Source of the DNA: Hyalangium minutum
GTDB lineage: Bacteria; Myxococcota; Myxococcia; Myxococcales; Myxococcaceae
Assembly (NCBI RefSeq): GCF_000737315.1
Contig: NZ_JMCB01000037.1
Location: forward strand, 1-9,257
Direction: 5' to 3'
Length of the DNA stretch: 9,257 bases
The notes below the pieces were generated by a model. The model did not search any database and was not told where the DNA came from. It saw only the letters and a program-made list of their open reading frames with translations. Positions within the stretch are counted from its first letter, which is position 1. Each line of letters begins with the position of its first letter. Of the stretch, positions 1 through 9,257 are shown piece after piece. Made by a program: the position numbers and the translations under genes.

Positions 1-16
1 GTAAGAGTTCACCGGC

Positions 17-1459
17 TCAAGCAGCCAGAGCAGCCGGAGCGGTCTCGAAGCTCGGGAGTAGCGAGGGAGGCTGGAGGCCGTGGCGGTGCGCCGCCAAGGC
101 TTGCGTCAGGTAATCCAGCACGGAGCGTTCCTGCAGTTTGAGCGTCGTGACGGTCGTGAGGACCCTTTCAACGAAGCGACTGCCCTCGGGGCTGCGGGTA
201 CCGAAGGAGGTTTTGCGGTACATGACGCCTGGACGGATGCAGCGCTCGGCGAAGTTGTTGGTCGGCTCCAACTCGGGCACGTCGACGAACGTCCACAGGC
301 ACTTCTCCAGCTTGAGGATTTCCTCTGCCATGCCTGCCGTCCTCTGCTCGGCGCACACCACCGCCTCACGCAGCAGGCGCCCCACGGCCCGCTCCACCTT
401 GCGCATCCGCCGCTGGAATACCTCTCTGGACAGAGTGCCGTCACGCACGCGGCGCCACCAGCGGAACATCTTGTCCCTCTGGGACATGAGCTGCTCGCCC
501 AGGCGCGCCCCTTCGCCGCCCCGGTCGATGAACCCTTGAAAGTCACGCGTCAAGTGTGCCCAGCACACTTGGCGCAGCCCCGCGTCATACCAGTTGTAGG
601 CACTCCACCTGTCCGTCACCAGCCAGCCCAGGAAGTCCTCACCCAGCAGCGCTTTGATGACTTCGCTGCCCCGGCTGGTGCTGATGCGGAACACCGCCAC
701 CAGCGTGGTGGCCACTACCCACAGCCACGCGCGTGCGCTCCGTCCCCTCTCCACGCCCTGGGCCCACCCAGTCTCATCGGCATGCACCCCGTCGGCTTGG
801 CGCACAAAGGCCTCGGCTTCGGTGACAGGCCCGGCCAGCGCCGCGCTCATCTCCCGCTCCAGGTTGATGACGCTGCCTACCGACAACTCCACCCCCACCA
901 AGTCCGACAGCGCGTCGCGCACCAGGCGCTTGGACAGCCGGTATTTGCCTACCAGCACGCTGGCCACCGCGGCCAGCCGCTCCCCAAAGGCGCTCGTCAC
1001 CTCCGGCGGCAGGGGGGCCCGCGTGGCACTGCCGCACCCCGCGCACTCCAACTGGTGGCAGCGGTACTCCGTCACCACCGCCGCTACTGGCGGCAGTTCC
1101 ACAACCTGGTGGCGCTCAGGCGTGGTGTCTTTCCCGCTTAGCCTCCTCTGGCAGCGCTGGCATCTGCTAGGCACCAAATCCACGAAGTGCTGCACCTGCT
1201 CGGGTGGCACCAAGGCCCGCTCGTGCTTCTTGTGGCCGGGCTGTCCACCGGGGCGTCGGCCTCTGCTGGGCTTCTGCAGGGGACGCACTGTGCCGGGCGG
1301 ATCACTCGAGGGAGGCTTCGAGCTGTTGGTCGAGTTCTGCTCCAAGCGCGAGCGCAACTGCGCATTCTCCTCCTCCAACTGCCTTATCCGCTCCAACGCT
1401 GCCGCCAGCAGCGCCTGAAGCTGAAGTACCTGGGCTTCTAATGACTCGGAGGAACTCAC
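17..1459 (-). CDS. tnpC: IS66-family DDE transposase (TnpC-like, 480 aa), apparently intact
   Basis: N-terminal coiled coil, NSSKPPSSD and GGQPGH motifs, zinc finger CQRC...CAGC, catalytic-region motifs VHADETGW, LVTDRWSAY, QVCWAHLTRDF, PTNNFAERCIR and SFGTRSPEG. GTG start; stop abuts the terminal IR. Confidence 0.95.
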   Translation of the reverse strand: MSSSESLEAQVLQLQALLAAALERIRQLEEENAQLRSRLEQNSTNSSKPPSSDPPGTVRPLQKPSRGRRPGGQPGHKKHERALVPPEQVQHFVDLVPSRCQRCQRRLSGKDTTPERHQVVELPPVAAVVTEYRCHQLECAGCGSATRAPLPPEVTSAFGERLAAVASVLVGKYRLSKRLVRDALSDLVGVELSVGSVINLEREMSAALAGPVTEAEAFVRQADGVHADETGWAQGVERGRSARAWLWVVATTLVAVFRISTSRGSEVIKALLGEDFLGWLVTDRWSAYNWYDAGLRQVCWAHLTRDFQGFIDRGGEGARLGEQLMSQRDKMFRWWRRVRDGTLSREVFQRRMRKVERAVGRLLREAVVCAEQRTAGMAEEILKLEKCLWTFVDVPELEPTNNFAERCIRPGVMYRKTSFGTRSPEGSRFVERVLTTVTTLKLQERSVLDYLTQALAAHRHGLQPPSLLPSFETAPAALAA

Positions 1460-1537
1460 TCAGCAGGTAGAACACGGCACGGCCTACCTGCTCAATAGGG
1501 TTCTACTCCGGCTGCTCTCTCCCCAACCAAGTCCCTC

Positions 1538-1552
1538 CCGGTGAACGGTTAC
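1538..1552 (-). repeat. IS66 left terminal inverted repeat (partner at 1-15)
   Basis: CCGGTGAACGGTTAC is the reverse complement of 1-15 with 2 mismatches. Confidence 0.9.
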
Positions 1553-1560
1553 AGTTCAAC
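1553..1560 (+). repeat. 8-bp target-site duplication AGTTCAAC (copy after the IS)
   Basis: Identical to 9151-9158. 8 bp is the canonical IS66 direct-repeat length. Confidence 0.9.
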
Positions 1561-1635
1561 ATGCCCCGGAAAACGACTCCCATACGACGGATCTAAAGCA
1601 TGATGTGGGGCATCCCGGCTCAGATGCGGCCAATG
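1561..1635. repeat. Continuation of the degenerate 84-bp repeat interrupted by IS66
   Basis: 9141-9158 joined to 1561-1626 forms one 84-nt unit. It aligns without gaps to 8973-9056 (about 47/72 over the best part) and 9057-9140 (about 47/84), by hand count. Confidence 0.65.
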
Positions 1636-1911
1636 TTCCCCCAAGCGGAGGAGGCGAGAGCGGGGAGTGAGGCAGCGGCCAGGAAGGAGCGGATGAAGCA
1701 GAGGACGCCGCGAGTGGATTGGGCAGAGTTGCTGAAGAGGACGTTCGACTTCGACGTGTTCGCCTGCGTCAGGTGTGGAGGCAGGCGGCGGGTCTTGGCG
1801 TATGTGAAGGCAGGCAGGGGAGTGCGAGCGATACGGGAGCACCTGGGCTTGCCCACGGCAGGTGTGAGCCTGGCCCCGGCGCAAGAATCAATCCAGGCCG
1901 CGGGGTGTTAA
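1636..1911 (+). pseudogene. 3' fragment of an IS91-like (Y2/HUH rolling-circle) transposase of myxobacterial type
   Basis: RTPRVDWAELLKRTFDFDVFACVRCGGRRRVLAYV...VRAIREHLGLP matches the C-terminal W..LL.R.F..DV..C..CGG...I..HLGLP signature of IS91/ISCR-like transposases. The catalytic N-terminal part is absent; the left boundary is approximate. Confidence 0.8.
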
Positions 1912-2115
1912 GGCTCACCCCTCCCCAGAGCCAAAAGGCCCAGTCCCCTACCGCGCCCCCCATGGGAGGGCGGCCTGGGCAGGCGTGTACCTCAAGGGGC
2001 TGCGCGGCCTGTCCACCGACCGGGCGCACTGCTCGGGCGGCACCTGTCAGCGGTCCTCCTCGGCACCTCCGCTCCAGTCCTCACCCGCAACATGGCCTCT
2101 ATCCTGCCTATACGC
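1912..2115 (+). mobile_element. IS91/ISCR-like 3' end with oriIS-like terminus (...TCCTGCCTATACGC)
   Basis: About 200 bp of GC-rich, hairpin-containing non-coding DNA downstream of the transposase stop, ending in CCTATAC. The position and terminal motif resemble ISCR/IS91 oriIS ends (recalled, not searched). Confidence 0.65.
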
Positions 2116-7879: not shown

Positions 7880-8084
7880 GGCTCTCCCGCACTTTATGTG
7901 GAGGGGGGCCGAGGAGGAAGCTGCGCGCATGGCCGTTCTTCCGCTCGCTTTCCGAGGGGAGAGTCACTGGGGCGTAGATGACGACAGACCCAAGACCAGA
8001 CTTCCCTGATGGATGAGTGTGGTCGGCAGCTCGCCGTGTCTCCCTTTCGCCTTCGAGGGGAACCACACGAAGTGCGGGAGAGCC
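7880..8084. mobile_element. 205-bp MITE-like element / deleted IS with ISL3-like ends
   Basis: 22-bp inverted repeats GGCTCTCCCGCACTTTATGTGG (7880-7901) and 8063-8084, 20/22 match with the outer 15 bp perfect. GGCTCT...GCACTT resembles ISL3-family ends. No target duplication is visible. Confidence 0.65.
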
Positions 8085-8213
8085 ACGGAACTGGGGCAGA
8101 CTCACTTCGGCAGCGCCCGCCAGGAGATGCGGGACGTGCTCAAGGTGGAAGTCGTGCCCCACTACCGCGCCCTCGCCGAGGGGCAGCTCGAAGACATGGC
8201 TGACGCACCGTAA
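8085..8213 (+). pseudogene. Orphan C-terminal fragment of an unidentified gene
   Basis: TELGQTHFGSARQEMRDVLKVEVVPHYRALAEGQLEDMADAP* has high-GC3 codon usage and begins exactly at the MITE right end. Confidence 0.45.
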
Positions 8214-8410
8214 CGACGGCGCAACAGGCGCCGCTTCTCGGGCGTGTCATTGAGGCCGGGTGGCAGCATGCGGGGCGCTCGTGGACGGCCGGCACCAGCG
8301 AGTGTTCAGTGTGAAATCCCCCTGGGGGACCGTGAGGCGATGGACTTCGGGCCTGACCGCCTCCCACCTTCCCTCGCGTGGGCTTCTTTCCCACGCGGTT
8401 GGGAGTCCTC

Positions 8411-8917
8411 ATGAATCGTCTTTGCTCACCGTCTCGCCTGCTGTCCTCGCTGTTTCTGTTGTCCGGAAGCGCCGCACTGGCCCAGACGCCGGAGCCCCCT
8501 CCGGTTGTATCTGGTCCTGCCGTCATGGTCATGGACGTGCGGCCCGGCCCCGAGGGCTCCGAGCCCTCCTTCCTTACCGACGTCGGCGGCCAGCTGATAT
8601 TCCGCGCCGACGACGGGACGAGCGGGAACGAGCTGTGGAGGAGCGACTACAATGCGTCAGCAATCTACAATGCGTCAGCAATCACGGCCGTCGCAGTCGG
8701 GTCCGGCGGAGAGGTGTACATCCGATGGGCCGGATTGCCGAATCCAGGGCCATGTGGAAACAACAATGGGTGGGTGATGATCCCGTCCAACGCCCCTGAG
8801 GAGATGAAATCGCTGGCAATTTCCCTGTATTTCAACGGCAATCCAGCTCGCGTCGACACTGCCGGTTGCGTCGGCGCATATGAACGTGTGACGACACTTT
8901 ACTCTCCGGGTGGTTAA
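8411..8917 (+). CDS. Chimeric secreted protein: signal peptide and partial ELWxxDGT repeat fused in frame to a foreign ~85-aa two-Cys domain
   Basis: RBS GGGAG at 8401 and ATG at 8411. Signal peptide ends in ALA-Q. DVRPGPEGSEPSFLTDVGGQLIFRADDGTSGNELWRSD is the ELWxxDGT repeat, cut before GT. Composition changes after 8647 (about 56% GC by hand count). Confidence 0.7.
   Translation: MNRLCSPSRLLSSLFLLSGSAALAQTPEPPPVVSGPAVMVMDVRPGPEGSEPSFLTDVGGQLIFRADDGTSGNELWRSDYNASAIYNASAITAVAVGSGGEVYIRWAGLPNPGPCGNNNGWVMIPSNAPEEMKSLAISLYFNGNPARVDTAGCVGAYERVTTLYSPGG
8647..8682 (+). repeat. Perfect 18-bp tandem duplication CTACAATGCGTCAGCAAT x2 (YNASAI x2)
   Basis: Read directly from the sequence; sits at the ELWxxDGT/foreign-domain junction. 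Confidence 0.95.
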
Positions 8918-8972
8918 TCGAGTCGAGAGTTACAGCTTAGAAAAGCAACCGGCTACCCAAACGAAATTGGAA

Positions 8973-9158
8973 CAACGCAACACGGGCAACATCCGCTGGA
9001 AAACGATCACGATGCGGCGAATCGAGCTCAAGATGGGCCGCATCGTGACTTAGATACAGCTGATCCAAGTCAACATGCCATCGGAAATGTTCAGGATTCG
9101 ATTGTTCTAAATCAAGGTCGCGGTCATGTTGAATTAAATGCGGGCCATAAAGTTCAAC
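8973..9158. repeat. Degenerate 84-bp (28-codon) tandem repeat in a low-GC segment, probably the 3' part of a minus-strand gene ending at TAA 8937-8939
   Basis: Three units align without gaps. In the minus frame, Leu/Leu/Phe/Val columns are conserved, the first three through different synonymous codons. 8941-9158 is about 48% GC by hand count. Confidence 0.6.
9151..9158 (+). repeat. 8-bp target-site duplication AGTTCAAC (copy before the IS)
   Basis: Identical to 1553-1560 and immediately precedes GTAAGAGTTC at 9159. Confidence 0.9.
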
Positions 9159-9257
9159 GTAAGAGTTCACCGGCTCAAGCAGCCAGAGCAGCCGGAGCGG
9201 TCTCGAAGCTCGGGAGTAGCGAGGGAGGCTGGAGGCCGTGGCGGTGCGCCGCCAAGG
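9159..9257 (-). mobile_element. Exact 99-bp repeat of 1-99: IS66 right end again (circular overlap or start of a second IS66 copy)
   Basis: Base-for-base identical to 1-99. Confidence 0.93.

Follow-up and report, generated by a model that had tools for sequence, protein, structure and literature searches.

Members of the IS91 family of insertion sequences (IS) form circular intermediates and co-mobilise adjacent DNA, and in several of them the tetranucleotide GTTC is both the cleavage site at the terminus terIS and the target (PMC13181058). At the other terminus, the published oriIS motif of the insertion sequence common region (ISCR) elements ISCR1 and ISCR27 is CTTCCTATACC; the oriIS of ISCR27 is GCGGTTGAACTTCCTATACC and lies 236 base pairs (bp) beyond its stop codon, and ISCR1 ends ...CTTCCTATACCC. 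In genome assembly, a terminal overlap of the size of the k-mer marks a cyclic path in the assembly graph. Here, a stretch of 9,257 nucleotides (nt) from Hyalangium minutum, referred to as the window, is compared with these systems. The window is the whole of contig JMCB01000037.1 (contig 37) of assembly GCA_000737315.1, which is that of H. minutum DSM 14724 (PMC5441343). An earlier note on this DNA had described it as a circular or tandem unit of 9,158 bp that carries an IS66 element. The analysis reported here favors, with a probability of roughly 0.6, a reading of the window as a linear chromosomal region that forms a cycle in a k=99 assembly graph, over any separate replicon. The ‘circular unit’ is most likely no real biological feature, and the components that are real belong to known IS families as ordinary members.

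The window begins at base 1 of an IS66-family element and ends at base 99 of the same element, so that both ends of contig 37 lie on a repeat boundary. Bases 1-99 match 9159-9257 exactly, as the earlier note had it, and this terminal redundancy is an assembler overlap of k-mer size and no second IS copy. A branch-free circle of 9158 bp opened at random would start at an IS end with a probability of ~2/9158; the actual start and end look like those of a path that sets out from a branching vertex in a repeat, where the first k-mer has more than one predecessor, and then comes back to it. None of the sequence observations confirmed here is a chance match.

The element belongs to the IS66 family by its DDE-type transposase, its inverted ends beginning with GTAA, and its 8-bp target-site duplication. 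The transposase matches Pfam DDE_Tnp_IS66 (PF03050, E=2e-37) along with DUF6444 and zf-IS66, and scores 319.5 bits against NCBIfam transpos_IS66 (NF033517), for which the equivalog cutoff is 180. The inverted ends are imperfect, agreeing at 13 of 15 positions (left end GTAAGAGTTCACCGG, 1-15; right end CCGGTGAACGGTTAC, 1538-1552, with the reverse complement GTAACCGTTCACCGG). The 8-bp sequence AGTTCAAC occurs on the plus strand of the window at 1553 and 9151 only, which bears out the earlier observation of a duplication. The accessory tnpA and tnpB open reading frames (ORFs) of the canonical three-ORF IS66 are absent from the 1,552-bp element; since only one ORF fits this length, the element belongs to the single-ORF subgroup of IS66, the one named ISBst12-like in ISfinder. 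A search for homologues of the transposase returned thousands of relatives, many of them on stand-alone contigs of 1.5-1.8 kb, as would fit a multicopy element that breaks contigs, and no further copy attributable to the H. minutum genome. The matching flanks had been described as the inner flanks of two IS copies. However, one IS66 copy is in evidence, reported again at the other contig end by the assembler, and the 8-bp duplication is the ordinary target duplication of a single IS66 insertion.

The sequence on the two sides of the IS belongs to one low-GC array with a period of 84 nt. When the IS and one copy of AGTTCAAC were removed and the restored sequence was compared with itself, identity at lag 84 was 55%, a value reached in 0 of 2000 shuffles (mean of the best values 34%, top 41%). 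The best ungapped matches of 1561-1636 within the window lie at 8991 (48/76) and 9075 (43/76), at distances of exactly 168 and 84 nt on the upstream side of the join, and stand ~7 and ~6 standard deviations above a background of 19.7 ± 4.0. Moreover, a related repeat protein (P0260, 135 amino acids, aa) aligns unbroken across the reconstructed join. The in-register array, together with the duplication across the IS, means that 9158 and 1561 were adjacent when IS66 inserted, and on this point, as on the 84-bp repeat itself, the earlier note was right. In an open and only possibly coding minus-strand frame, the array (8985-9158 plus 1561-1633) reads as 28-aa repeats of the form HV[ED]L...H..D...RFP; the array region has a GC content of ~51%, compared with ~64% for the window, and P0260 is its one clear relative.

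A second contig of the same assembly, JMCB01000035.1 (contig 35, 28.3 kb), carries in its terminal 7.6 kb the sequence of window positions 1634-9158 followed by 88 nt of the IS, and hence stops within the same IS on which contig 37 ends. Upstream of the shared block, contig 35 encodes a serine/threonine kinase-tetratricopeptide repeat protein and a dirigent-like protein, which are unrelated chromosomal genes. Because window positions 1634-9158 recur in this chromosomal contig, most of the supposed circle is also chromosomal sequence, and the independence from the chromosome that a circular unit had implied finds no support. The shared block opens with a repeat of ~0.5 kb, here called R (R1 in contig 35, R2 in the window), and continues into a 7-kb stretch called V; in the window, R2 is preceded by segment j, the remainder of the third array unit. 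All differences between the two contigs lie within 1787-1957, inside R, and comprise a 3-nt substitution with a 1-nt indel (R2 has GGC at 1787-1789), plus two substitutions of one base each. The following 7,289 nt (1958-9246) contain 0 differences, and the perfect identity of R1 with R2 extends over at least 158 nt (1958-2115), longer than k=99.

The polarity of these differences is informative. In an alignment with family members, R1 has a unique derived change (TTAA with a frameshift) and R2 has two (C1919 and C1957), and at each site the other copy holds the family state; since each copy has derived mutations of its own, R1 and R2 are old paralogues. On its left side, R1 retains 21 nt more of family sequence than is common to R2, and the identity of the two begins abruptly at TGTTC (1634). 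Had V been duplicated along with R1 and R2 and diverged at the same rate, it should show ~45 differences; 0 were observed. The chance that three events all fall within 324 of 7,613 nt is (324/7613)^3 ≈ 8e-5. That V is identical in contigs 35 and 37 means either that a single DNA stretch was reported twice or that an exchange took place very recently within 1958-2115. Exact-protein look-ups placed the IS66 transposase and a 78-aa ORF specific to R2 on contig 37 only, so the assembly holds one copy of the IS, of j, and of R2.

Judged from its homologues, R is a discrete and widespread repeat with a conserved terminus at 2115. The ORF at 1600-1911, which encodes the transposase tail of R2, has 221 homologues in Myxococcota and matches positions 427-487 of the 509 in NCBIfam NF052416 (ISCR clade Ia, E=8e-9). 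It has no Pfam match and lacks the catalytic HUH Y2 domain (PF04986), a domain that some of its homologues, longer ones found elsewhere, do carry. Among independent copies in Myxococcota, most lose homology at 2115 and two do so a few bases further on, the conserved terminus being ...CATGGCCTCTATCCTGCCTATACGC; a scan of a genome collection for this terminus found seven loci, all in other Myxococcota. The terminus lies 204 nt beyond the stop codon, ends ...CTGCCTATACGC, and carries the motif CCTATAC, so that the stop of homology and the motif together mark a conserved oriIS end downstream of the transposase tail. No terIS was found upstream of the transposase: R is truncated ~480-500 nt from its ori end, and the left flanks differ between copies. 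Nor does a conserved tetranucleotide follow the oriIS-like end in the 12 copies compared. With the catalytic domain and terIS both absent from the window, its ISCR/IS91-type ends sit on dead remnants. The ends proposed earlier at 2115 and 4788 are nonetheless genuine ends of this type, the former by the stop of homology and the latter as the terminus of a 95% identical copy.

Several further observations concern the R family. The left junctions of both R copies hold GTTC (X...CCGTTC|R1 at 4742-4745 of L001, the contig 35 locus; j...AATGTTC at 1634-1638 of the window), and cleavage at surrogate termination sites may have produced the truncated copies. Adjoining the joint of j and R2 is an 8-nt similarity, TGCGGCCA, which is shared with the array units as well as with the R family. 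Remnants of this kind, 3' portions of ~0.5 kb, form an abundant repeat family in Myxococcota (window 1634-2115; L001 4746-5249; loci L004-L011). The 221 homologues of the R stump are mostly 72-180 aa long, and the name ‘ATP-dependent helicase HrpA’ that several sources give to such stumps looks like a mis-annotation that has been passed on. On a 4.25-Mb contig of a metagenome bin (L011), two direct R copies (4176-4653 and 7672-8173) lie 3.5 kb apart and bracket a 73-aa ORF and a gene for a 628-aa collagen-like (Gly-X-Y) protein, which gives a second case of R-gene-R in which the cargo is unrelated. Lastly, the 117 nt at 5564-5680 of the window are 94% identical to positions 5246-5362 of a Myxococcus qinghaiensis locus (L005), where they stand just upstream of an R-type end, and are probably an ISCR/IS91-type end of another subfamily.

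Functions that would allow the unit to replicate were sought in all frames. A six-frame Pfam scan of the circularised unit found no Rep, Par, relaxase, Mob, or integrase domain, in agreement with the earlier note on Rep and Par; its matches were the IS66 transposase, TetR, NmrA, a DUF2379 fragment, and a weak outer-membrane-barrel match. Replication, partition, and mobilisation features were likewise not found by PADLOC or NCBIfam, repeat scans of the window revealed no iterons, and the window has no tRNA or Rfam match. PLSDB holds no plasmid relative beyond the TetR-NmrA pair. The window is therefore not placed among autonomous replicons, as it has no replication genes and its positions 1634-9158 lie within a chromosomal contig.

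What the two contigs display directly, namely their identity and ends, the anatomy of the IS, the continuity of the array, the R family with its boundaries, and the distribution of differences, could arise as follows. The chromosome would read X – R1 – V – [IS66] – j – R2 – Z, where X is the sequence upstream of R1 in contig 35, Z is an unseen continuation, and R1 and R2 would be two old direct copies of the ~0.5-kb ISCR/IS91-type 3' remnant. V would be an accessory stretch with an 847-aa orphan gene, transposon-end remnants, the TetR-NmrA pair, and gene fragments, and the 1,552-bp IS66 element would have inserted once, into a linear chromosome, in the 84-nt array at the border of V and j. Because R1 and R2 are identical over more than k=99, a graph of that k would merge them from 1958 to the end of R, giving a cycle R-V-IS-j-R with X as entry and Z as exit. 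The path out of R2 would then have continued into V rather than Z, returned to the IS, and been reported with the 99-nt overlap, the same V being reported once more in contig 35. We infer that R2 and V are adjacent in silico only and that the read set contains further IS66 junctions.

Of the options listed in the earlier note, an assembly-graph loop with k=99 is thus the best supported, so that the earlier interpretation holds in part; the circular-unit reading is the part that most likely does not stand. The expectation that the loop-closing join lies elsewhere in the window is borne out, since it is located in 1958-2115; of the two ori ends nominated as joins, 2115 is upheld in that the loop closes in the repeat ending there, and 4788/4789 finds no support. 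That the DNA was necessarily circular or tandem when the IS inserted does not follow, as a linear X-R1-V-j-R2 gives the same picture.

The same graph is produced by an in-silico continuation from R2 into V, by a tandem duplication, or by a circle excised through R1 × R2 recombination, and sequence alone does not separate these three. The in-silico loop is favored because assemblies are commonly misjoined at repeats that exceed the read length, because a fixed duplication via 158 nt of identity is a priori rare, and because a circle without replication functions would not persist. Three points weigh on the other side. No contig with R followed by Z was retrieved, the scanned genome collection being one without H. 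minutum. An assembler aware of read pairs should resolve a repeat of 158-165 nt and rarely emits a 7-kb unique segment twice; that V was emitted twice could mean that it is truly at double coverage and that read pairs linking R2 and V exist. Contig 35 ends at IS base 88, not 99, which misfits pure de Bruijn output. The objection from pair-aware assembly leaves a real unit, formed as a tandem amplification or an excised circle by recombination between two dead ISCR/IS91-type remnants, as a tentative alternative that is clearly less probable than the loop.

The larger part of that residual probability goes to a tandem duplication or amplification, unlikely on balance, in which unequal recombination between R1 and R2 on sister chromosomes would have produced X-R1-V-IS66-j-R2/1-V-IS66-j-R2-Z. 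V, the IS, and j would then truly be present in at least two copies, and contig 37 would be the correct repeat unit. The graph would be the same as that of the assembly loop and all sequence facts would fit; the duplication would also account for the 7-kb segment in two contigs and for a pair-aware assembler that follows R2 into V, and the window shows exactly the hybrid R expected from a crossover to the right of 1957. Yet recombination within 158 nt of perfect identity (~480 nt at ~99%) is infrequent, and its product would need to have reached fixation or a high frequency in the culture that was sequenced. The finding of the IS transposase and the R2 ORF on one contig only is also listed against it, and is uninformative if the duplication was collapsed. 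An extrachromosomal circle beside the chromosomal copy is improbable. It would stem either from excision through R1 × R2, which predicts exactly the window sequence, or from a one-ended rolling-circle event of ISCR/IS91 type driven in trans, for which the wealth of ISCR-type ends in the region and the formation of circular intermediates and co-mobilisation of adjacent DNA by the IS91 family (PMC13181058) could be adduced. However, with a replication function in no frame, such a circle would not be kept at an abundance visible to assembly; the only ISCR-type transposase in the window is a C-terminal stump without the catalytic domain, and the circle holds no oriIS-terIS junction.

Very little weight is left for an autonomous small plasmid without a recognisable Rep, a second copy of which would be integrated in the chromosome. 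The terminal overlap would fit, the coding content is not contradictory, and the 847-aa orphan has no assigned function. Against this stand the lack of any Rep, Par, Mob, or iteron-type feature and of a PLSDB relative, a gene content of chromosomal debris, that is, gene fragments and transposon remnants, and 7.5 kb embedded in contig 35; the model of the 847-aa protein, with weak matches to a GT-B-like body and Tudor/Agenet-like barrels, also seems unlike a replication initiator. Just as improbable are a composite transposon or segment with two IS66 copies, suggested by IS sequence at both contig ends, and a non-homologous tandem duplication made in a single step, with 1633/1634 as its novel joint, suggested by the abrupt start of R1/R2 identity at TGTTC and the nearby similarity TGCGGCCA: the former was rejected because there is one full IS copy, with a single target duplication and an in-register array spanning it (two independent copies would share one duplication with a chance of 1/65,536), and the latter because it predicts equal divergence of R and V, at odds with the distribution (3 changes in 324 nt of R, 0 in 7,289 nt) and polarity of the differences (≈ 8e-5).

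The features of the window are collected in the table.

Table. Positions of features in the H. minutum window (contig 37).
Feature	Position	Strand	Remarks
Single-ORF IS66-family insertion sequence	1..1552	-	1,552 bp; transposase and terminal inverted repeats
IS66 transposase ORF	17-1459	-	480 aa
8-bp target-site duplication AGTTCAAC, right copy	1553..1560	.	
Segment j, remainder of array unit 3	1561..1633	.	in register with the units across the IS
R2, 3' remnant of an ISCR/IS91-type (HUH Y2) transposon	1634..2115	+	transposase C-terminal tail and oriIS-like terminus
R stretch identical in contigs 35 and 37, site of loop closure	1958..2115	+	last difference at 1957
Segment with orphan 847-aa gene between two R-type ends	2116..4723	+	ORF 2174-4717; called as 831 aa from 2222
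Outer-membrane beta-barrel-like ORF or fragment	4662..5444	-	weak similarity to Phenol_MetA_deg and to the N-terminus of TraB
R3, solo 65-nt copy of the R terminus	4724..4788	+	95% identical to 2051-2115
Probable fourth ISCR/IS91-type end remnant, other subfamily	5564..5680	+	ends ...TCCTTCCTATGCTC
TetR-family regulator	6109..6744	-	
NmrA-like NAD(P)-binding protein	6867..7793	+	divergent partner of the TetR gene
C-terminal fragment of a DUF2379/DUSAM gene	8019..8213	+	last ~30 residues of the domain only
Secreted ELWxxDGT-repeat protein (fragment)	8378..8917	+	short
Low-GC array, 84-nt period, units 1-2 and start of unit 3	8985..9158	.	IS66 target
8-bp target-site duplication AGTTCAAC, left copy	9151..9158	.	
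99-nt terminal redundancy	9159..9257	.	exact repeat of IS bases 1-99

The most prominent gene of V encodes the 847-aa protein, of which this start variant has no exact match on the public record. Its family comprises 17 proteins, from Myxococcota only, and the protein has no Pfam, NCBIfam, or PADLOC match. An AlphaFold model (mean predicted local distance difference test score, pLDDT, 74) gave weak Foldseek matches, none at E ≤ 0.001, that point to a GT-B-type body of two Rossmann domains and to C-terminal tandem barrels of Agenet/Tudor type. In H. minutum, the 2.6-kb gene segment lies almost exactly between the terminus at 2115 and the R3 copy of that terminus, a layout that resembles, by analogy, an ISCR-type gene capture or the integration of a circle of gene plus end. 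The closest relative shares 91% DNA identity over 2143-4711 only and stands in a different context without R ends. A general tie between this family and R ends was considered and rejected, given homologue loci (L013-L015) that lack them.

Elsewhere in V, the sole PLSDB megablast match is that of the TetR-NmrA pair (6076-7801), 76% identical at the DNA level to a 1.8-Mb replicon of Novosphingobium sp. RL4, which suggests from sequence similarity that the pair may have spread horizontally. Several V genes look like fragments, namely the DUF2379 and ELWxxDGT genes and the outer-membrane-barrel ORF, one of whose weak similarities is to TraB, an outer-membrane-exchange protein. The ELWxxDGT gene contains a perfect 18-bp tandem duplication (8647-8682) that codes for YNASAI twice. 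It should be noted that gene calls differ on identical DNA: the TetR regulator was called as 127 aa in contig 37 and as 211 aa in contig 35 (L001 9243-9878), and the outer-membrane-barrel ORF was called in contig 35 only.

These results call for caution with short circular contigs. Contig ends that overlap by k are no evidence of a plasmid, a virus, or a circular intermediate under three joint conditions: a repeat boundary marks the start of the overlap, a chromosomal contig contains the same sequence, and replication functions are absent. Myxobacteria seldom carry autonomous plasmids, and to report one that does not exist would therefore be misleading. Should a duplication or a circle nevertheless prove real, it would add a modest case of amplification mediated by repeats, with dead ISCR/IS91-type remnants serving as portable sites of recombination through which accessory genes of a myxobacterial chromosome are amplified or looped out, in this case the orphan 847-aa protein and the TetR-NmrA pair. 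The more useful by-product is the recognition of a remnant family of ~0.5 kb that is abundant in Myxococcota, often mis-annotated, and sometimes found bracketing genes. Such remnants will break or loop short-read assemblies of Myxococcota.

Among known systems, the plasmid pMF1 of Myxococcus fulvus would offer an analogy as a small circular myxobacterial DNA; the window differs in having no replication or partition genes. The likeness to ‘circular’ contigs induced by repeats in de Bruijn graphs, as judged from the contigs alone, extends to the 99-nt identity, the ends at a repeat boundary, the content present in a chromosomal contig, and a cycle that runs through two repeat families; the stop of contig 35 at nt 88 of the IS, not 99, is the difference. 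The IS agrees with the single-ORF (ISBst12-like) subgroup of IS66 in its transposase, GTAA ends, and 8-bp duplication, and at ~1.55 kb has the length of many myxobacterial relatives, whereas canonical IS66 elements have the tnpA and tnpB accessory ORFs that it lacks. With translocatable units such as those of IS26, the locus would share a unit bounded by direct repeats and able to amplify or excise by homologous recombination, except that the recombining repeats here would be inactive 0.5-kb ISCR remnants in place of an active IS and that the duplicated or circular form is hypothetical. Relative to ISCR/IS91 elements, the copies in the window are without the HUH/Y2 domain, terIS, and a conserved tetranucleotide after the ori, while the R ORF corresponds to the C-terminal tail found in transposases of ISCR clade Ia and the R terminus resembles the oriIS of ISCR1 and ISCR27. 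Finally, as in ISCR arrays, a gene of the window is likewise placed between two R-type ends.

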